This document shows positions 7,238 through 41,518 of a stretch of DNA of 64,000 bases, piece by piece. Source of the stretch: Eutreptiella sp. 'Long Island Sound 2002' (taxonomy: Eukaryota > Protista > Euglenida); the NCBI GenBank assembly GCA_964036045.1, contig OZ038378.1, positions 8,680,001-8,744,000 on the forward strand, written 5' to 3'. Under the pieces are notes generated by a model, which saw nothing but the letters and a program-made list of their open reading frames with translations, did not search any database and was not told the origin of the DNA. The translations under genes were made by a program, and so were the position numbers. How positions within the stretch are numbered: position 1 is the first letter of the stretch; every line of letters starts with the position of its first letter.

Positions 7238-7410
7238 GTAAGTCGTGTACAAAAAAAACCGTCTAGTCGTGTAATTTTTTTTTGCTGTAAATGCGTGTAA
7301 TTTTTTTTTGTTGCAAGTCGTGTGAATTAATAAAAAAAATTGAATTTTTTTATTTTTGCGGTAAGGGAGTGTAATTTTTTTTTTGCGGTAAGTCGTGTAA
7401 ATTATAAAAA
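7238..7410. repeat. GTCGTGTAA + poly-T/A motif array (related array at 10330-10610)
   Basis: Multiple GT(AA)GTCGTGTAA-T(n) units; the same motif recurs at 10330-10610. Confidence 0.8.
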
Positions 7411-7800
7411 AAATTGAAAAATTGAAAGAAATGCAACCTTTGCAATACATGCGCAATATGTACAGCTGCCGGTTCCGTACGGCACCCTATAGCGACCTTA
7501 ACGATGGGACGCCGAGTCCACAAAGCACATAGTACTCTGCGTGGCCACCAATTAGTTGGGACTCGGCCAATATAACATAGTTTCACATGGAGTCACTGGC
7601 ACTAGACACAAAATCAAGCCCAAGAAAAGAGTTCTGACAGGGCCATGGCAGGATTGTGTATAAAGTCTGATGACTGATGTGGCATGTTGTTTTTGCAGTG
7701 TATACAACAAGATGTGTGATATGTCTGATATAGATCGGATGCTTGGAGGAAGGGGGGGGGGGGTTGTCCAAATGGGTGTGCAAAAAGTTGATGCCCCCCA

Positions 7801-8890
7801 CCCCATAGGCCCCGATAGGTCCCCATAGGTCCCCATAGGTGCCAATGGGTCCCCAAAGGTCCCCATAGGTCCCCATAGGGGCCGATAGGCCCCCATAGGC
7901 CCCCATAGGTGCCCATAGGCCCCAAGAGGTCCCCATAGGTGCCAATGGGTCCCCAAATGTCCCCATAGATGCCAATAGGCCCCCATAGGCCCCCATAGGC
8001 CCCGATAGGTCCCCATAGGTCCCCGTAGGCCCCGATAGGTCCCCATAGGTCCCCATAGGCCCCCATAGGTCCCCATAGGTCCCCATAGGCCCCCATAGGT
8101 CCCCACAGGCCCCCACAGGCCCCCATAGGTCCCCACAAGCCCCCAAAGGTCCCCATACGTCCCCACAGGCCCCCATAGGTCCCCACAGGCCCCCATAGGT
8201 CCCCATTGGCCCCCATAGGTCCCCACAGGTCCCAATAGGTCCCCATAGGTCCCCATAGGTCCCCATAGGTCCCCATAGGCCCCGATAGGTCCCCATAGGC
8301 CCCCATAGGCCCCCATAGGTCCCGATAGGTCCCCATAGGTCCCCATAGGTCCCCATAGGTCCCCATAGGCCCCCATATGTCCCCACAAGCCCCCATAGGT
8401 CCCCACAAGCCCCCAAAGGTCCCGATAGGTCCTCATAGGTCCCCATAGGCCCCCATAGGTCCCCATAGGTCCCCACAGGCCCCCACAGGCCCCCATAGGT
8501 CCCCATAGGTCCCCATAGGTCCCCATAGGTCCCCATAGGTCCCCATACGTCCCGATAGGTCCCCATAGGTCCCCATAGGCCCCCATAGGTCCCCACAGGC
8601 CCCCATAGGTCCCCACAAGCGCCCAAAGGTCCCGATAGGTCCCGATAGGTCCCCATAGGCCCCCATAGGTCCCATAGGTCCCCATTGGCCCCCATAGGTC
8701 CCCATAGGTCCCCATAGGTCCCCACAGGCCCCCACAGGCCCCCATAGGTCCCCATAGGTCCCCATAGGTCCCCATAGGTCCCCATAGGTCCCCATAGGTC
8801 CCCATAGGTCCCCATAGGTCCCCATAGGTCCCCATAGGCCCCCATAGGTCCCCATAGGTCCCCATAGGTCCCCATAGGTCCCCAAAGGCC
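7801..8890. repeat. ~1.1-kb minisatellite of a 10-bp unit (CCCCATAGGT and variants)
   Basis: Directly visible tandem array. The long GPMGTYGDLW ORFs on the minus strand are its translation. Confidence 0.97.
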
Positions 8891-8914
8891 CCTTGGGAGC
8901 CGCCCCCCGAACAC

Positions 8915-10445: not shown

Positions 10446-10589
10446 CGCTGTAAATGCCCGTAACAAAAAAACCGTCAGGTCGTGTAATTTTTTTTTTTGC
10501 TGTAAGTCGTGTAAGCCGGCTTACACGACTTACAGCAAAAAAAAAAATTACACGACCTGACGGTTTTTTTGTTACGTGCATTTACAGCG
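10446..10589. repeat. 144-bp near-perfect spacerless palindrome within a GTCGTGTAA array (10330-10610)
   Basis: Centre GCCGGC at 10515-10520. The arms match, including 11-nt T and A runs, with one mismatch seen. Confidence 0.9.
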
Positions 10590-14095: not shown

Positions 14096-15419
14096 GCACA
14101 TGCACACCTGTGGCCACGTTGCTCGGACCAGGTCTTTCAATGCCTTTGCCGTTGCATTTTGCTTGGGACCTTGGGTCCTTTGCTCCTTGTTCGTAGGCCT
14201 CCTGCCGGCATTTGCCTTCTTCCATTCTTGCAGCCACTCTGCCGCTTGTTGCTCTGGGGACTGCACGTGCTGTGACATGCGCAAGGCTTTTGCCATCAGT
14301 GGTGGGAGGTGGGGCAGAGCAGCAAGGGGGGCAGCAGGGGGGTGCAGAAGCACCGGTGGCCAAAAGGCTTATCACTGGGACATATCAGGTGATGAACTGA
14401 GACCACTGATGCACCAAATCACCCACATGCCACACTCCATTCCATACCATTGCCTGCACAGGGCAGTGGAATGCCTTCATGTGGCGTGTACAAACATGGT
14501 CTGCCTCGTCTGGCCTATCAACGTCTGAAAATGTTAGTATTCCAAGGGGGTGGGGTGCCATCAAACGGGTATGAACACCCGGCATTGGGAACTGCATTTG
14601 TTCCAGTTTTGTGGAGGACATTCCCTGGACAGCGGATGGCTGATGTTGTGTGACAAATCACAGTGACTGCTTGCAATACGTCCATGCCCGATCTTTGCTG
14701 TGCTGACATGGCCAACAGGCATACATTTTGGTGCTCCGATGTTGCCTTGTATCAGCTTGTGTTTCTGACGAGGGCCTGTGGGCAAGGCTATGGCACCGCC
14801 GCAGTGTGCAGTGTGCAGAACGCATAGTATGCAGAGTGCACAGAACACAGAGTATGCAGAATGTGCAGTGTGCACAGTGTACAGTGCGCAGTGTGTAGAG
14901 TGTGTCATACACTGCACACTTTTAGGGTGTAAGGTGGATCAGCCACAAAAATATGGTGACTACAGGGCAATTTGCTTTGACAGTGCATAGCTTTCGCAAG
15001 GCGGAGGCTGGACAGAGGCCAGAATCGATTCACTGAAATGCTCGAGTTCGTTCGGAATGGGCCATTGGTTGTCTTCCGAGCAACTAAGACTGAGCTTGCG
15101 CTGTCTCGTTGCCAAATGTTGCAGTGGGCCTGCCCTGACGGGCTGGCGATCTCCACATGTACAGCTGTGCGTGTGTGGGTGCGTGCGTGTGCATCATCTC
15201 CCCGCCTTACTAAACAGGGAGGGTCGGCACTAATTCTAGGGCTCGGAAAACTCTGTGAAAGAGAAGGGCTGAGTTTGCCGGACTGGGATCTCTGGCCTCT
15301 GACCAGGAACATTCGATGGCCCTGCAGCGCCGAACAATGAACTTGTGGGTTGCATCGGTGGTGGGAATGTAGGTTTGTTGAACCTCGCAGTTGGCGCATG
15401 ATTGCAATTGATACCTTGG

Positions 15420-35181: not shown

Positions 35182-35440
35182 TGTACCCTTCGTGAACGGC
35201 CGTTAAGTGGCCGTTTGAATAATTGCGTGAATTTCACGTGAATTTACCCAAATTTTGAGGTTTTTGGGGGAAAATGCCATATTCTTGGTTCATTTCAAGG
35301 GCTTTGAGGGGCCAAAATTCCTCCCCTAGCTTTGTTACGCATCATCCAATGAAAGTCCCGCCCCAAAAGCATGCATCATGACCGCACCGTGCCCAAAACG
35401 AGAGGTGCCGGAACCCGGCAAGCCTGTAGCCGATTCACAG

Positions 35441-35510
35441 CCGTGAATTCACGTGAATTCGTACGAAATTCGCACGAAATTCGTACGAATTTCACGTGAA
35501 TTCACGTGAT
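35441..35510. repeat. GAATTC/GTACGAATT palindrome array 1
   Basis: Tandem and inverted copies of GAAATTCGTACGAATTT and CACGTGAATT. Confidence 0.9.
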
Positions 35511-35655
35511 TTTACACTAATGTTACCCGTGTGCACCCCCTGATTTGTCCTCACACCCCTAGTAAGCCCCCCAGCATGCACCCCGGTCACAGGCAACAAT
35601 GGTCTGGGTTCGTAAGGTCATCTCATGTCCGTCTCTTGCGGCACCGGAACCGCCG

Positions 35656-37386
35656 CTATAGAGTCTGAAGGTGCTGCATGTCGGTTAGAAGCCGTCTTCT
35701 TGTGCGGCTTGCATACGGGTGTACACTTATGGGCCCTTGCCCATGTTGAGCCCTTTTGGTCGCATCCCACCCATGCAACCAAAGGCTATCGTCAATGGTG
35801 TGGTTGTCCACAACCACTTGCACCCCTAGTCTCCCCCGGAGGAGGCTTAGGCCCCCGCTGTTGCGCAACATGCGCTTCAGCCTCCGGTGACTTCCCTCCA
35901 TGGCAAAGCAGGAGAACTTTGACAAGATTCTCCACTTCTTTGCAAAATAATACATGTGGTCGATCCAAAGATGCGTCCACAGAAGTTTGCCCCACTGGAG
36001 CTCATTGTGGGCAGCGCCCATGGCTATGCTATGGTTCCGGAGCCGCCCCAAGTCGGCCCCGAAGAACCATGCGGAACACCACGCGTATACACACATGCTT
36101 GCAAAATTCTCCCACCACGTTTTGCACACCAACTCCCAACTTTTTCCCCCTACTTGATGCTGCCTGACACTAGGCTGCTGTAGGCAAGCATCTATCATCT
36201 TCTCCCAACCCCTATTGCGCATGAAATGGATGGCAGCAGCACACTCCATCCTCACCTTCCCCTTGCTGTTTGCCTTGTCATTATTTAATGAGGCACGGGT
36301 GCAAGTTCGTGCAGCAAGCCGTGCCTCATCTAGAACCGGTTGCAGCATGGTGCGTGCCACAGTGGCCGGTGCCTTCCCTGTCAATTGTACAACTAGGTCC
36401 CGTGTCCCGTTGACTGCACACAACAGGACACGAAGGACCCCATGGAGGCCATAATCAGGCACTCGCCTATCACTCGTAATGGTCCTATATATAGCATTTA
36501 TGGCAACGGCCGGTTCCCAGTTGCCGTCTATCGCACTTGCTGTGCCAAAGGTAGCAAGGCACAGAGCACGGTTACGCATGCAGACCCAACACACAGTGGC
36601 ACCAGGGGATTCTGCCTTCCAGTTTTGGCAGCCCGCCATGAGCACCTGTGCCTTACCATCTGCACACAGAAAAAAAAGGGACTGCCTATCGTTCCCTGCC
36701 GTATCCTTAAAACTTACGGTTGCGGCCTTGCGCAACTCATCATCAAAATCAATTTCCTGGGAGGCCGCGTAGAGGGTCTCCCACTTTTCACTGCCCCCTA
36801 GTAGCCACCAACTAGATAGTTGGTTGGGGCTGGCGGTGCCACCAAGCGTGCAATGGACGTACGAGGCCTCATGCCTCGATGTACCGTCCACCGCAATAGG
36901 CAACCAATGCAGCCGTCTGTCCCCGGGCTGCATGATGGCCGAGGGTGGGGGTGGTCGACACTTGAATAGGTGGCCGATGCGGTCAGGTAGGTAGCAGGCC
37001 GCACCATTGATGACCGTGTCGTCACCCGTATAGGCAGTGAACGCCCGGGACACCGGCAACGCTAGCTGCCGAAGCATGCCGTACACCTGGTCCCATACCA
37101 CACCGTACGTCATGCTCCCCACTAGGTACCGGGACTCTGTCCTAGAGAGGTGCAATGACCGGATCCTCCACACGGCCATAATCAACCTCTCCTCCTGGGT
37201 GGGCTCGGGCTGGACAGTGGCTACAATTCTTGTTTCGGGGGTAAGCACTATTTGCCCCGTGTCGGGCAGGTACTTGACGGTGTAGGGTGCTGCAAGCTCC
37301 TTGGTAACAACCTCGCGGAGCTCTTGTAGGCGCCGCCGTCGTGTACGATCCGCTACCAGATGGAATGGCTCCTTGGGCCGTGGCAT
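35656..37386 (-). CDS. RAG1/Transib-like DDE transposase, 576 aa, apparently intact
   Basis: PRPKEPFHLVADRTRRRRLQEL (NBD-like), IAVDG (D1), FFLCADGK (D2), CWVC, PDYGLH, THLWIDH (H-x4-H) and FSCFAMEGSHRRLKR (E), in the order of RAG1 D600/D708/C727/C730/H937/H942/E962. Confidence 0.85.
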   Translation of the reverse strand: MPRPKEPFHLVADRTRRRRLQELREVVTKELAAPYTVKYLPDTGQIVLTPETRIVATVQPEPTQEERLIMAVWRIRSLHLSRTESRYLVGSMTYGVVWDQVYGMLRQLALPVSRAFTAYTGDDTVINGAACYLPDRIGHLFKCRPPPPSAIMQPGDRRLHWLPIAVDGTSRHEASYVHCTLGGTASPNQLSSWWLLGGSEKWETLYAASQEIDFDDELRKAATVSFKDTAGNDRQSLFFLCADGKAQVLMAGCQNWKAESPGATVCWVCMRNRALCLATFGTASAIDGNWEPAVAINAIYRTITSDRRVPDYGLHGVLRVLLCAVNGTRDLVVQLTGKAPATVARTMLQPVLDEARLAARTCTRASLNNDKANSKGKVRMECAAAIHFMRNRGWEKMIDACLQQPSVRQHQVGGKSWELVCKTWWENFASMCVYAWCSAWFFGADLGRLRNHSIAMGAAHNELQWGKLLWTHLWIDHMYYFAKKWRILSKFSCFAMEGSHRRLKRMLRNSGGLSLLRGRLGVQVVVDNHTIDDSLWLHGWDATKRAQHGQGPISVHPYASRTRRRLLTDMQHLQTL

Positions 37387-37505
37387 GGTGTGAGATACAG
37401 GACCTGTTGAATGGGCAGGCAGTCATCGCAAAGTTTCTACCATCCCCCTCCCGCAGACAACTCTCTCTACTGTGATTCGCATGCAATTAAAAGAAATTCA
37501 CATAG

Positions 37506-37750
37506 ATTCGCACGAAATTCGTACGAAATTCGTACGAATTTCGTGCGAATTTCACGTGAATAGAAATGTGTGAATATTCTGAAAATGTGAAATTCGTACG
37601 AAATTCGTACGAAATTCGTACGAATTTCGTACGAATTTCGTGCGAATTTCACGTGAATAGAAATGTGTGAATATTCTGAAAATGTGAAATTCGTACGAAA
37701 TTCCTACGAATTTCGTACGAATTTCGTACAAATTCGTGCGAGTTTCACAT
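37506..37750. repeat. Palindrome array 2 (upstream of the transposase)
   Basis: Same motifs, with internal higher-order duplication; ends ~120 bp 5' of the ATG at 37386. Confidence 0.9.
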
Positions 37751-38124
37751 GACTGTCACAGAATTTCTGCCAAAGCCTCATCCTTCTGCCCTCGTTGACC
37801 CTCACAAAGCAAGCTCAGGATGGTGCTCATGGGCTATCACACACCCAGTCCAGTGGCTGTCATTCCGCTCGTCACTCAGCCAGCAGTGTAACACGTCAGG
37901 GGGCATAGCATATCCCAAATAAAATACAAACAGTTCCGCAGAAAAAATCGCAAACAGGTCAGGGGGCACACCGTACCCCAATTAATGTACAAACAGTGCT
38001 GCAGAAAATTTCGCACAGTGGGGGGGGGGTACCCCACATATCGGTCAAACTGCCCATGCTTGGGGGGGGGGGGGGCAGGATAACATTCGTCGTGGTTAGA
38101 AAGGACAGGTGCTCCGGAGGGTAC

Positions 38125-38943
38125 CTACGCACCCCCCCCCCCCGGGAGCAGAGCTCCGGGGCGCCCTTTCCGCTTGCACGTGGGGGGGGGTCCGTCCTCC
38201 TCGACGTCAATGACGTCAACCACCACCCCCATCTTCCGCTGCCTCCCCACATGGACGCGCATGGCAAGCCATGCCACGTCCACCCACTCCGGCCTCCGCT
38301 GCTCCCAACCCGTGAGCACATTCAGCCCAAAAACCCGAGCCGTCGTCACCGTCCCCGCCTCCCCGATCCGCGCCACCCCCGTCTGCACCCGCCAGTGCCC
38401 ACTCACAAGCCGGTAGGCAAACATGCCCACCAGCTCCTTCCCCGCAGGCAGGTTGGACCCCCCCCGGACCACAATGGGGCAGGGGAAGGAGATGCGGAGG
38501 GTGCCCTGCACCCCCCGCGACTCCAACTCCATGTCCCACACGGCACTGAGATGCCGCTGCCGCCCATCGGGCCCGGGCGGCACCTGCTGGGTCCAGGCCG
38601 GATCCGGCTGCCTGGCGGCCAGGGTGACCCGGTCCAGGGGGGGGTCGTTGTGGGCGTCGCCCAACTCGTCGCGGGACGGCTGGGGCACCACCACCTCGCG
38701 CACCACATGCCCCCTGGCGGTGCTAGCCTCGCTGCCTCCCGAACGTCGAGAGCGCTGCGACCCCTCACTGCGCACACTGCCGGCCTCGCTTGGTGCCCGT
38801 CCACCGCCGGTGCCTGCGGGCTGGTCGCCACCGGGGCCTTCGGCGGGCTCGGCGTGCTCCTCGGGCAATCGAGGCCGGGGCTTGTACTTGCGCTTGCTGT
38901 GGTGCCGAATATCCGGCGACCAAGCGGTGAACGGGACCTGCAT
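38125..38943 (-). CDS. Transposon cargo gene 1, hypothetical protein (~272 aa)
   Basis: Open GC-rich frame from ATG 38943 (MQVPFTAWSP..). A disordered N-half precedes a beta-rich globular-looking C-half (LSAVWDMELESRGVQGTLRISFPCP..WRVQTGVARI). No family recognised. Confidence 0.6.
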   Translation of the reverse strand: MQVPFTAWSPDIRHHSKRKYKPRPRLPEEHAEPAEGPGGDQPAGTGGGRAPSEAGSVRSEGSQRSRRSGGSEASTARGHVVREVVVPQPSRDELGDAHNDPPLDRVTLAARQPDPAWTQQVPPGPDGRQRHLSAVWDMELESRGVQGTLRISFPCPIVVRGGSNLPAGKELVGMFAYRLVSGHWRVQTGVARIGEAGTVTTARVFGLNVLTGWEQRRPEWVDVAWLAMRVHVGRQRKMGVVVDVIDVEEDGPPPTCKRKGRPGALLPGGGGA

Positions 38944-39029
38944 GCAGATGTGGGGAGGTGTGCAAGGCACAAATTGAGAAAGGGGGAGTGGACACGAGGC
39001 AATGCAAGAGCAAAAGGAGCAAATTGGAC

Positions 39030-39170
39030 GGAATTCACAGAAATTCGTACGAAATTCGTACGAATTTCGTACGAATTTCACATTTCGAGAAAATTCACAC
39101 AAACTTATTCACGTGAAATTCGTACGAAATTCGTACGAATTTCGTACGAATTTCACGTGAATTTCGTCCA
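39030..39170. repeat. Palindrome array 3 (upstream of cargo gene 1)
   Basis: Same GAAATTCGTACGAATTT motifs; ends ~90 bp 5' of the ATG at 38943. Confidence 0.9.
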
Positions 39171-39174
39171 ATTT

Positions 39175-41123
39175 GCCAATACACAAAGCAAACACACAAG
39201 CAAGCACACCTTGCACTCGCATGGGCAGGTGATGCTCCATGCCCCGGTCCTCGCGCACTTGGGCAACCGCCACGCCACGCTGGGACCGTGCTCACCAGGT
39301 GCCACAGCGTGGTCGGCCGACCCGGGGGGGCAATGCCGGACAAGGCGAAGTGGATCTCCGACTCCGCGTCGACATCGCCCCCCTTGGCGACCTCCAGCTG
39401 GTGCACGCTGCCCACGAAGAACAGCATGCACTGGGGGCCGACCTCGATGACGGCGAGGTCGGAGGCCGGGGCCGACCGGCAGATGAAGGTGGGGTGGAAG
39501 GGGCAGGTGGGGGGGCCTGCCGGGAGCGTCTGGGGGGGGTCGGCGAAGAGGGCCTCCCACAACCCCACCCTCCCAACCGCCCCCTTCCCCACCCACAACA
39601 CCTGGGGCACGCTGGGGAGGTCCCAGCTGGACAAATCCCCAGCAACGTCCAGGGCCTCCTTGGGGGGGGTGGCGTCCAAGTGTGTGGCGTTGGCCTGGTG
39701 GTGTTTGTGTCGGGGGTCGGGGGTCCACAGGTTAAAAAGAGCCCCCTGCAGCCCATCCTTGGAGTCCGGGAGGGCAGGCAATCCATGATGGCGGCTGGTG
39801 GCCACCATCAGCAGCATGTCCCCCCGATGCAGCTCAACGGTGTCCCAGCGCGCCTCCCCCGCCTCCCCAAGGGCCGTCCCCGCCTGCACCGCCACCTGGT
39901 AGTCCTCTGACAAGCAGAGGAAGCTACTCAGGTGGCTGTCCCCCACCTCCCTGTCGCTGGGGGGGAGGACCTCGGGGTGGGTGGCCAAGTCGGTGTGGGG
40001 GAGCTGCGGCCCACTCCCCACACTGGCCACAATGACGTTGCCCGGCGTCATTGGGTGGAGGTCCCCAACCCCAGGGACACTTTCGGTGAGGTGGGGGTGG
40101 AACTTCTTGAAGAGAGGCCCCCCCACCCCGACCCCAAGGTGCTCTTGCGCTTTGCCACCGGCGGGGGAGCGCAGGATCCTTGGCCTGCTCCTCACTCCGC
40201 GCGGCGTTGAAAAGGAGCTCAAAATTCTTTGCGACGACTTTTTCGTCGCCGCTGCCCCACGCCTTCATCACCTTGTTCCACCCCACCTCACAATCCCGTG
40301 CCTCCACAAGCCCCCGAAGCACAATGTAGCCGTTCCCATCAACAAAGTTGAGGGGCGGCTGAGAGGGGCCAACCCTGTCGGGGGCGGGGTCAGGGCTGCC
40401 CGTCACCCCATGAGGGGGGTCGGGAAGGGGTTCGGTGCGGAGGGGGGGTTCACTCGAAATGAAGGGGGGGGCGCATGAGGCACCACGGTGCCATTGCAAA
40501 GAAGTTGTGCTATAGAAGGTGGGGTGGGTGACGTCGGGGACGTGCACCTGGGGGGGGGGGGTTGTGGGATGGAAAGGGGCGACGCCCAAATCATCCCACC
40601 ACCGGGGGTTGGCAAGATGCCAAGAAAAGGGGAAAAAAGAGTGGTCTGCTGGTGCACCTGCAGCAAGATCGTGCATGCACACCATATCGCAGTGGGGGGG
40701 GGTGTGGACGAGGTTAGTGGTGGGGTACACCTGGACGTGGGCGTCCTTAGGCTTCCCCACAGGGTTGTTCCTCATCGAGTTGAGGAGCTGGTCAACACTG
40801 GAGGGGAGAGGGGTTAGATGGAGAAATTTGAGGGTGGGGAGTTGGTGGCGCAGTTCCCTCCACAGGGTTGTGGCCCATCCCCTCCCCCCGAGGTAGCTGT
40901 TGCGGGTGGGGCTGCGCATGTCGATGTGGATGACATCGGGGGAGGGGTCGAGGGAGGCTGTCCAGCCCACGATGTCATCCACCCCCAGTGCCTCCGACTC
41001 GTACGTTGCCTCCTCCAATTGATGGTGGGCAACGGGGAGCGCTTGGTAGTGGGCGAGGGTGTCGGCTGCGGGGTCGGGGCGCGAGGCCACGCTGGCGAGT
41101 TGAGACATAGTCTGCTGCGACAT
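39175..41123 (-). pseudogene. Transposon cargo gene 2: GNAT-like N-terminus + PhyH-like 2OG-Fe(II) dioxygenase, one frameshift at ~40152
   Basis: ORF 39924..41165 has VIHID..YLGGRGWATTLW (GNAT motif A-like) and DGNGYIVLRGLV..FELLFN..RRWQ. ORF 39095..40222 continues with GPQLPHTD (HxD)..SSFLCL..LHRGDMLLM..RHHG (distal His). Deleting one A from the caaagcg run joins them. The 3' end is uncertain. Confidence 0.72.
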
Positions 41124-41194
41124 TGTTAAAAGAGAAGAACGCGAGGGCTTTGAGAGCTGTAACAAAGCGAAAGAGTGGAAAGGAGGGTAAATTA

Positions 41195-41330
41195 GTACGA
41201 AATTCGTACGAATTTGGTACGAATTCGTACGAATTTCGTGCGAATTTCACATTCTCGTGAATCTGTGAATCTAGCGTGAATTTCTGCGTGAAATTAGGTG
41301 CGTGAATTTCACATTCACGCGAATCTCACC
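41195..41330. repeat. Palindrome array 4 (upstream of cargo gene 2)
   Basis: Same motifs; ends ~70 bp 5' of the ATG at 41123. Confidence 0.9.
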
Positions 41331-41518
41331 AAATGTGTTAAACCATGCGGGGACTTTAAACCTCTAAATTGCACCTATTTGTTGCATCTTACTTTGGGCG
41401 AAGGTAGCACGACAAAAGCACACGATAGCACCAAGTTACGAGCAAAACACAGCAAAATTGGGTGAAATTCACGGTACCGTGAATCTCGGATTCAAACGGC
41501 CGGTTCACGAAGGGTACA

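Follow-up and report, generated by a model that had tools for sequence, protein, structure and literature searches.

The three-gene transposon described here carries arrays of a short palindrome at every gene boundary and near both of its ends, and we consider it slightly better than an even bet (probability roughly 0.55) that these arrays constitute a lineage-specific code of predicted sites for a protein encoded by the element itself, probably also regulating its three genes. The element lies in a window of 64 kb (the whole stretch of DNA that was analysed) from a Euglena-type genome of 2.28 Gb. The arrays are an integral and fixed part of this element, and are not MITEs.

The element is a cut-and-paste transposon of 6,337 bp (35182-41518) with the ends TGTACCC...GGGTACA and a 2-bp target duplication. 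The terminal sequences are identical across 14 copies, 13 of which are flanked by a 2-bp duplication of any sequence. The left, transposase-proximal terminal inverted repeat (TIR; 35182-35261, delimited by the ends of the 14 copies and by left-right alignment) starts with TGTACCCTTCGTGAAC and contains GCGTGAATTTCACGTGAATTT at 35229-35255, while the right TIR (41452-41518) ends in GTTCACGAAGGGTACA and contains the 18-bp palindrome ATTCACGGTACCGTGAAT at 41467-41484; in the left-right alignment the left TIR exceeds the right one by 11 bp. Palindromes related to GTGAAT/CACGTG are present inside both, and an earlier note on this DNA had reported array-related motifs next to both TIRs. Genome-wide, the 18-mer is found at 14,401 sites, which at ~14.5 sites per full copy corresponds to ~1,000 element copies, an estimate matched by the counts of left ends (1,085) and transposase markers (919).

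All three genes are encoded on the minus strand, in the order gene 3, gene 2, transposase. The earlier note's three genes are indeed there, but two of them are damaged in the window copy. Gene 2 (38125-38943) is truncated by a deletion of ~700 bp at ~38156; in full copies it encodes 350-395 aa with a C-terminal coiled coil. A 63-bp tandem duplication (37890-38015) occupies the spacer downstream of it. Gene 3 (39095-41123) is frameshifted into the pieces 39924-41123 and 39095-40222 and forms a single 658-aa frame elsewhere (L004:2509-4485). Searches of Pfam, NCBIfam, PDB sequences and the Atlas returned no match for gene 3; the motifs PHTD...RHHG, kept across families, suggest that its product may be an Fe/2-oxoglutarate oxygenase. 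Sequence searches identified no DNA-binding domain in any of the three element proteins, and no ParB-like domain.

The transposase gene (gene 1; 35656-37386) encodes 576 aa in the window copy and 587 aa in most copies. Its AlphaFold model, built on an alignment of 40 sequences (pLDDT 87.2, pTM 0.81), predicts the RAG1/Transib fold, in which zinc-binding and helical domains flank an RNase H-like catalytic domain. The top 49 Foldseek matches against the PDB are all RAG1, HzTransib or BbRAGL (E 1e-10 to 1e-5), with a TM of ~0.5 over 585-690 columns. In a 10-sequence alignment D243, C269, D476 and H477 do not vary, and D167 and H472 hardly do; a CxxC occupies 266-269, and residues 496-500 form a conserved MEGSH. 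The conserved acidic and putative zinc-binding residues follow in the order D, D, CxxC, HxxxxH, E, and may be the counterparts of RAG1 D600, D708, C727, C730, H937, H942 and E962. Pfam, its RAG1 models included, gave no match at E ≤1 for 13 diverse members of the transposase family, and the Pfam models of Plavaka or CACTA did not match the transposase either; among sequence-based searches, language-model features alone pointed to RAG1.

The four arrays, which like the TIRs and the tandem duplication carry no strand, are made of the 10-bp palindrome TTCGTACGAA and its edge variant TTCACGTGAA, with a unit repeat of 11 bp. TTCGTACGAA occurs 18 times and TTCACGTGAA seven times, always within the arrayed element and nowhere else in the 64-kb window; AAATTCGTACGAATTT with up to two mismatches has 25 matches in the window, all within 35455-41247, and none in 100 shuffles. 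Array A (35444-35513) is subterminal and consists of 5-7 units of TTCNNNNGAA in 11-bp phase; it comes after the transposase stop codon (35656), where a fourth array had been noted before. Array B (37493-37760), between gene 2 and the transposase, has three palindromic blocks with a period of 97 bp in the window copy and two blocks in most copies. Array C (39020-39175), between gene 3 and gene 2, has two blocks and includes a 56-bp perfect palindrome (39107-39162); the stop codon of gene 3 falls within its first unit. Array D (41178-41336) is subterminal, upstream of gene 3, and is followed by at least six GTGAAT half-sites. Arrays A and D are placed 260-340 bp inward from the two element ends. 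An array follows every stop codon, and one precedes every start: the gap from the nearest unit to the ATG is 66 bp for gene 3 (41189 to 41123), 87 bp for gene 2 (39030 to 38943) and 107 bp for the transposase (37493 to 37386), close to the ~70, ~90 and ~120 bp given earlier. A pyrimidine tract with AG, a candidate splice-leader acceptor, is seen between array and ATG at genes 3 and 1, and likewise in a sister family; there is no AG after the array upstream of gene 2.

The anatomy of the unit can be read off directly: TTC-NNNN-GAA, a 10-bp palindrome, with a one-base spacer. With spacers of one base (11-bp phase) all sites lie on the same helix face, and since the spacer base is A in a block's left half and T in its right half, the units are arranged head to head. 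This polarity, A..A then T..T, is found in 74 of 75 blocks and its reverse in none, while 26 of the 75 are unbalanced by more than one unit. Identity at the 11-bp lag is 0.41-0.64 across arrays. The units are confined to the non-coding parts of the element: in the window element's family, GTGAA reaches 23.5/kb in non-coding versus 1.2/kb in coding DNA, and ACGAA 31.6/kb versus 0.8/kb. Each block folds as a hairpin (-18 to -34 kcal/mol, z -6.7 to -10.9; -29.6 kcal/mol, z -8.9 for the DNA hairpin of array A), and perfect palindromes of 40-56 bp are present. The half-site CGTGAA is common to the edge units of the arrays and to the terminal repeats.

Arrays A, B and D are observed at the same positions in all 14 copies, and array C in all 11 full-length copies; in the remaining three, which are deletion copies, it is gone along with genes 2 and 3. 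Copies differ in how many units and blocks they have, and no part of the element varies more within the family than the arrays, which show ~4% substitutions and 24% gaps.

In related families arrays recur with other motifs. A different palindrome makes up the arrays of two sister families, whose transposases are 50-59% identical to that of the window family. In one sister family (57-59% identity in the transposase, 35-40% in gene 3 and 24-29% in gene 2) the three genes follow in the same order, and each gap holds an 11-bp array of TTCGCGCGAA; GCGAA density there is 19.6/kb non-coding versus 1.3/kb coding. Genes 2 and 3 belong to the conserved core of the lineage and are not exchangeable cargo. 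Upstream of the transposase, 11-bp arrays of other palindromic units are found in L033 (50% identity), L034 (44%) and L041 (37%). The motifs of the remoter relatives (37-44%) are further ones; five lineages have five array motifs, at corresponding places. The ~270 bp visible upstream of the transposase in the more distant family P0081 hold no array. The terminal-repeat half-site is TGTACCCTTCGTGAAC in the window family, and TGTACCCTTTGCGAC(T), ..CTGCGAAC or TGTACCCTTTGCGAAC in the sister families. Judged from these sequences, the TIR half-site appears to change in step with the array motif, an observation that is suggestive only, covering two motif states (the window family versus two related families).

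On the reading that we prefer, the arrays would be clustered sites for a sequence-specific DNA-binding protein encoded by the transposon. Candidate binders are the N-terminal parts of the transposase and of the gene 3 product, and the coiled-coil protein encoded by gene 2. The protein would mark the element's own DNA; at the subterminal arrays it would load the transposition machinery or raise its local concentration. Since an array lies 66-107 bp upstream of every start codon, expression of all three genes could be coupled through the occupancy of common sites. It is binding, the identity of the binder and the effect on expression or transposition that we infer here. The earlier note had offered three proposals for the arrays, namely shared promoters, transposase-binding sites giving coordinated autoregulation, and recombination-signal-like or relic ends by which gene cassettes are added and swapped; sites for an element protein with coordinated regulation fit best, in view of the joint change of array motif and TIR half-site, and the cassette idea is not supported. 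Several observations go against the site model: sequence searches gave no DNA-binding domain for any of the three proteins, each block is also a long, hairpin-forming palindrome that pure binding sites do not require, the arrays are highly variable within the family, with no sign of constraint on individual units, and P0081 has no array in the ~270 bp visible upstream of its transposase. Only tentatively would we extend the model to the proposal that each lineage of these Euglena RAG1-fold transposons has a private helical-turn palindrome code, read by one of its three proteins, by which the element would recognise its own ends and switch the three genes on together, the oxygenase-like protein perhaps modifying the element's own chromatin or DNA.

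Could the arrays instead be promoters or enhancers for host transcription factors, one per gene, with palindromes working in either direction? We think this unlikely, though worth entertaining. The short distances to the three start codons speak for it, as do arrays upstream of the transposase in four other lineages, the candidate acceptors between array and ATG at gene 3 and the transposase, and the palindrome CACGTG, which is a classical bHLH/bZIP core. However, the motif is replaced among close families (TACGAA/GTGAA versus GCGAA; CTACTAGG; GCGCGCGC), which a conserved host factor would not tolerate, and the terminal-repeat half-site changes along with it; moreover, within the element no gene lies downstream of array A, and gene 2 lacks an AG after its upstream array. 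We know of no characterised RNA polymerase II promoters in Euglena for comparison. A structural role is doubtful: gene boundaries would be marked by DNA cruciforms, or by long hairpins in a polycistronic precursor RNA, as places of termination, 3'-end formation or processing between cistrons that splice-leader trans-splicing then matures. Hairpin formation by every block and the perfect palindromes of 40-56 bp speak for it; the genes are co-oriented, with arrays after every stop and the gene 3 stop inside array C, and the host genome contains thousands of copies of the Euglena splice-leader sequence. A hairpin, however, needs neither an 11-bp phase nor palindromic 10-bp units, the blocks unbalanced by more than one unit persist nonetheless, array D precedes the first gene and has no upstream cistron to process, and the half-site shared with the terminal repeats is left unexplained.

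Internal recombination signals or relic transposon ends, serving cassette gain, loss and reordering, are very unlikely. The RAG1 fold of the transposase and the CGTGAA half-site of array edges and terminal repeats lend the idea some appeal, one deleted copy has one breakpoint in array B and another in array C, and the genome marker counts of the modules are unequal (transposase 919, gene 2 469, gene 3 414). Against this, a comparison of copies, which the earlier note had suggested as a check, revealed internal deletions only: no reordered or foreign cassette was seen among 20 copies, and all copies and the sister family have one gene order. Breakpoints are not enriched in arrays, which make up 8% of the element and hold 2 of ~18 against ~1.5 expected by length, and right-hand breakpoints cluster within gene 3, away from arrays. 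The terminus motif TGTACCC is absent at the arrays, nothing significantly like a terminus adjoins the internal ones, internal terminus-like matches do not exceed shuffled controls, and pairwise distances between modules are positively correlated (rho 0.5-0.7). Scarcely credible, finally, is the idea that the arrays arose by independent insertion of a small palindromic MITE or satellite that has nothing to do with the element, an outcome that the earlier note had set against its own proposals. Unit number is very unstable, and for about one-third of the exact-match array loci on chromosome 1 the nearest 8 kb contain no transposase marker; but no target duplications were found flanking the arrays, sister families hold positional counterparts with another motif, and the 64-kb window is free of arrays beyond the element. 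We rejected independent insertion on the fixed positions in 14 copies and on the genome-wide site count, which equals copies times sites per copy at ~1,000 element copies.

Partial parallels to the arrangement exist. In the red-algal Plavaka element (EnSpm/CACTA) of Bostrychia moritziana, tandem inverted-repeat arrays adjoin PAG3, which is said to join a ParB-like DNA-binding domain to a 2OG oxygenase domain; the arrays differ between families, and the authors infer binding of the accessory protein to the DNA of its own element (bioRxiv 10.1101/2025.02.11.637652). This parallel, published in 2025, extends to a multi-gene cut-and-paste element with arrays and, should gene 3 encode an oxygenase as its motifs suggest, to the accessory gene. 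The element described here differs in its RAG1/Transib-fold transposase, in arrays that occupy every gap and both subterminal regions instead of adjoining one gene only, and in the strict 11-bp phase of the units. In maize En/Spm (CACTA), subterminal repeats are bound by TNPA, overlap the element promoter and give autoregulation. Both elements have short target duplications and a short motif repeated in either orientation in the outer few hundred bp at each end, in the window element in non-coding DNA only; En/Spm, however, is not known to have arrays between genes, its motifs do not form tandems at helical-turn phase, and alternative splicing of a single transcript yields both of its proteins.

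Non-coding arrays of sites for an element's own proteins are known from En/Spm, and in combination with oxygenase-type accessory genes they were reported from red algae in 2025. The element described here would extend that design to a RAG1-fold transposase lineage and a euglenid host, to a stricter geometry of 10-bp palindromes one helical turn apart with head-to-head polarity, and to a more complete layout in which arrays stand at each gene boundary and close to the two ends. Motif turnover in step with the terminal repeats amounts to a natural specificity swap for finding the predicted reader protein. Euglena gene expression depends on splice-leader trans-splicing. If the private-code reading is true, the arrays would rank among the earliest cis-regulatory sites to be defined in Euglena, and would form an additional recognition layer of a kind not described for RAG1/Transib-type transposases. 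An abundant, recently active element with a sharp upstream motif offers a practical route to cis-regulatory DNA and tools for Euglena. RSS-like internal signals for cassette exchange would be the more exciting reading, but are unsupported.

In the phage Mu internal activation sequence and the Tn7 end sites, internal or multiple transposase-binding sites double as operators. The coupling of transposition to expression through such sites, as proposed here, is similar; Mu and Tn7 are bacterial and use unrelated proteins, with one enhancer or end-confined sites and no array before every gene. Integron attC sites, the image that underlies the cassette idea, resemble the arrays as imperfect palindromes at gene boundaries, but the element has no site-specific recombinase and a fixed set of genes, and no cassette variation was seen among copies or families. 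With Transib, RAG1-RAG2 and ProtoRAG the element shares the transposase fold. The catalogued Transib hallmarks, a 5-bp target duplication and CAC... termini, are replaced here by 2 bp and TGTACCC...GGGTACA, and the element has two extra conserved genes and internal arrays, neither of which, to our knowledge, has been described for Transib or RAG-like elements. The 11-bp difference between the element ends is reminiscent of the 12/23 spacers of RAG.

The element occupies window positions 35182-41518, with gene 3, gene 2 and the transposase all on the minus strand, and one motif is common to four arrays within this region. The nearest unit of array D (41178-41336) lies 66 bp upstream of the ATG at 41123, that of array C (39020-39175) 87 bp upstream of the ATG at 38943 and that of array B (37493-37760) 107 bp upstream of the ATG at 37386, in agreement with the earlier note, which had placed arrays about 70, 90 and 120 bp before the three start codons. 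The fourth array is likewise where it had been described, 3' of the transposase stop (array A, 35444-35513), and the array-related motifs reported at both terminal repeats are GTGAAT/CACGTG palindromes inside them. Searched with up to two mismatches, the 16-mer array core has 25 matches in the 64-kb window, every one inside the arrays, and none in 100 shuffles.

The array unit is the 10-bp perfect palindrome TTCGTACGAA, with TTCACGTGAA or TTCGYRCGAA at the block edges. Neighbouring units are separated by one base, which sets an 11-bp phase. This base is A throughout the left half of each block and T throughout the right half, so that each block is itself a palindrome of 40-60 bp, the longest perfect one being 56 bp (39107-39162, array C). 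Across 14 copies the A..A T..T order is found in 74 of 75 blocks and the reverse order in none; 49 of the 75 are balanced to within one unit.

The arrays are integral to the element. Arrays A, B and D sit at constant places in 14/14 copies, while array C, found in each of the 11 full-length copies, has gone with the deleted segment in the three deletion copies; ten full copies were stitched together from overlapping loci. Blocks hold 3-7 units, with 2-3 blocks in array B and 1-2 in array C. The alternative would be independent MITE insertions with their own target duplications. On chromosome 1 about one-third of the exact-match array loci have no transposase marker within 8 kb; these may be deleted or diverged copies. 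Against this explanation stand the fixed positions, the absence of target duplications flanking any array, and the genomic counts. The 18-mer GAAATTCGTACGAATTTC (≤1 mismatch) has 14,401 matches in the 2.28-Gb eukaryotic genome of which the window is part and about 14.5 per full copy, hence about 1,000 element copies, a figure in line with the 1,085 left ends and the 919 transposase markers counted. An exact array-core 29-mer has no match among JGI metagenome contigs.

The element, a cut-and-paste transposon, has the termini TGTACCCTTCGTGAAC...GTTCACGAAGGGTACA; in 13/14 copies it is flanked by a target duplication that is 2 bp long and of no fixed sequence. Full-length copies measure about 6.9 kb; the window copy is missing about 700 bp within gene 2 (at position ~38156), and its gene 3, a single 658-aa frame in other copies, is frameshifted. 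The transposase-proximal terminal repeat (left, 35182-35261) is longer than the right one (41452-41518) by an 11-bp insertion, GGCCGTTAAGT, preceding a segment common to both ends (TTTGAAT...GTGAAT-palindrome...ACCCAA(A)TTTTG, ending in ACCCAAATTTTG). The sister family carries this extra segment too, again in its transposase-proximal repeat, and the one-helical-turn asymmetry recalls the 12/23 spacers of RAG signals. The GC-rich gene 2/gene 3 part contains many runs of 8-14 G or C (38020-38190, 39530-39670 and 40440-40710), which coincide with the frameshifts and with several of the deletion endpoints; such runs may reflect mutation hot spots or homopolymer errors made in assembly.

The 587-aa transposase has 553 relatives at E ≤0.001 in a full HMMER search. 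Searches of Pfam, of NCBIfam and, with profiles from alignments A1, A2 and A3, of the PDB found no match for any of the three element proteins, and the ESM Atlas gave no usable match for gene 3. An AlphaFold model of the transposase, built from a 40-sequence alignment (pLDDT 87), has RAG1, HzTransib or amphioxus RAG-like chains as all of its best 49 PDB matches, and the transposase is on this basis a RAG1-fold enzyme. It falls outside Transib as catalogued, from which the element differs by its 2-bp duplication, its TGTA termini and the absence of Pfam RAG1 matches. Genes 2 and 3 are genuine and conserved: both persist in the sister family, at 35-47% identity for gene 3 (E 1e-78 to 1e-83) and 24-29% for gene 2 (E 1e-11 to 1e-15). 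The transposase and gene 3 each have a pN/pS of about 0.6 among copies. The gene 2 product carries a coiled coil at its C-terminal end. Gene 3 had been described as GNAT-like with a 2OG dioxygenase; we find no support for GNAT, and the oxygenase part stands through a conserved HxD...H-type motif only, the PHTD...RHHG motifs being compatible with an Fe/2-oxoglutarate oxygenase.

Sister-family loci, which come from another assembly (ENA ERZ25074135), encode a transposase 57-59% identical and keep the order gene 3, gene 2, transposase. Their arrays, again 11-bp, are built of another palindrome, TTCGCGCGAA, and lie in every gap as well as close to the transposase-proximal end. In a second related family, L033 (50% identity), the units upstream of the transposase are ATCGCGCGA; at this place the relatives L034 (44%) and L041 (37%) have 11-bp units of CTACTAGGAKY and GGCGCGCGC, respectively. 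Between families, the inner terminal-repeat sequence, TTCGTGAAC in the window family and TTTGCGAC, CTGCGAAC or TTTGCGAAC in sister families, varies in step with the array motif. The motifs are concentrated outside coding sequence: per kb of non-coding versus coding DNA, GTGAA occurs 23.5 vs 1.2 times and ACGAA 31.6 vs 0.8 times in the window family, and GCGAA 19.6 vs 1.3 times in the sister family. Contigs of the more distant relatives P0081, P0082, P0098 and P0099 show little or no flanking DNA (those read are ≤2 kb), and the distant family P0081 has no array within the short flanks present. P0081 itself, a 554-aa relative of the transposase, is the same in three metagenome contigs (L036, L037 and L038) that part ways at a G-run about 45 bp past its stop, so this family probably ends there, without a downstream array.

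The best-supported reading is that the arrays are lineage-specific putative docking sites for an element-encoded protein. The units share one helix face and occupy the two subterminal regions and each gene boundary; as docking sites they would mark the element's own DNA and probably tie the expression of the three co-oriented genes to that one protein. The TNPA sites of En/Spm provide the classical analogue. If the arrays were instead promoters for a host factor, one would be expected before each gene, as is found; array A lies beyond the last gene, and the motif differs from family to family together with the terminal repeat. Structural or RNA-processing palindromes are a further rival: folded as DNA hairpins, the blocks reach -18 to -34 kcal/mol (z -6.7 to -10.9). 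A pyrimidine tract followed by AG, a candidate splice-leader acceptor, lies between array and start codon in gene 3 and the transposase, and in the sister family too; gene 2 lacks an AG after its upstream array. The 24-nt Euglena gracilis splice-leader sequence has 7,483 genome matches (≤2 mismatches) and none in controls; these are dispersed over chromosomes and far above expectation for tandem SL-RNA genes alone.

The earlier note also had the arrays as possible recombination-signal-like or relic ends by which gene cassettes are added and swapped. Of the deletion breakpoints, 2 out of about 18 fall in arrays; since arrays make up 8% of the element, about 1.5 are expected there by chance. Comparison of 20 copies yielded internal deletions as the sole type of rearrangement, gene order is conserved between families, pairwise distances of the element modules are positively correlated, and no significant terminus-like sequence was found at internal arrays of the window or sister family, all of which leaves cassette exchange and relic ends unsupported. 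A 'relic end' upstream of the sister-family transposase was dropped (local alignment 23, shuffled maximum 27). Right-hand deletion breakpoints cluster within gene 3, and copies with deletions lack genes 2 and 3 but retain the transposase, which fits the genomic marker counts (919 for the transposase, 469 for gene 2 and 414 for gene 3). Such derivatives are the opposite of what is usual for non-autonomous copies. Among copies L001-L030 the transposase part is about twice as similar as the others, with pairwise substitutions of 1.3% compared to 3.3% in the gene 2 part and 2.6% in the gene 3 part.

The closest published parallel of the element is found in red-algal Plavaka (CACTA) transposons, where the accessory gene PAG3, reported to combine a ParB-like domain with a 2OG oxygenase, reportedly adjoins family-specific tandem inverted repeats (bioRxiv 10.1101/2025.02.11.637652). 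A different 6.6-kb element adjoins a sister-family copy (L031:9930-16556, limits TGTACCC...GGGTACA); its proteins have no Pfam match and are unrelated to the transposase, gene 2 and gene 3, and all its intergenic gaps contain a 20-bp palindrome, CTGGCCGAAATTTCGGCCAG (14 copies, ~70 bp spacing). Within the window, GTCGTGTAATTTTTTTTTGC-type units form a 118-bp perfect palindrome at 10459-10576 and recur 3 kb upstream, at 7265-7418, as 26-bp and 74-bp tandem repeats, and a 10-bp satellite, CCCCATAGGT, with about 109 copies and strong GC skew, spans 7801-8892.
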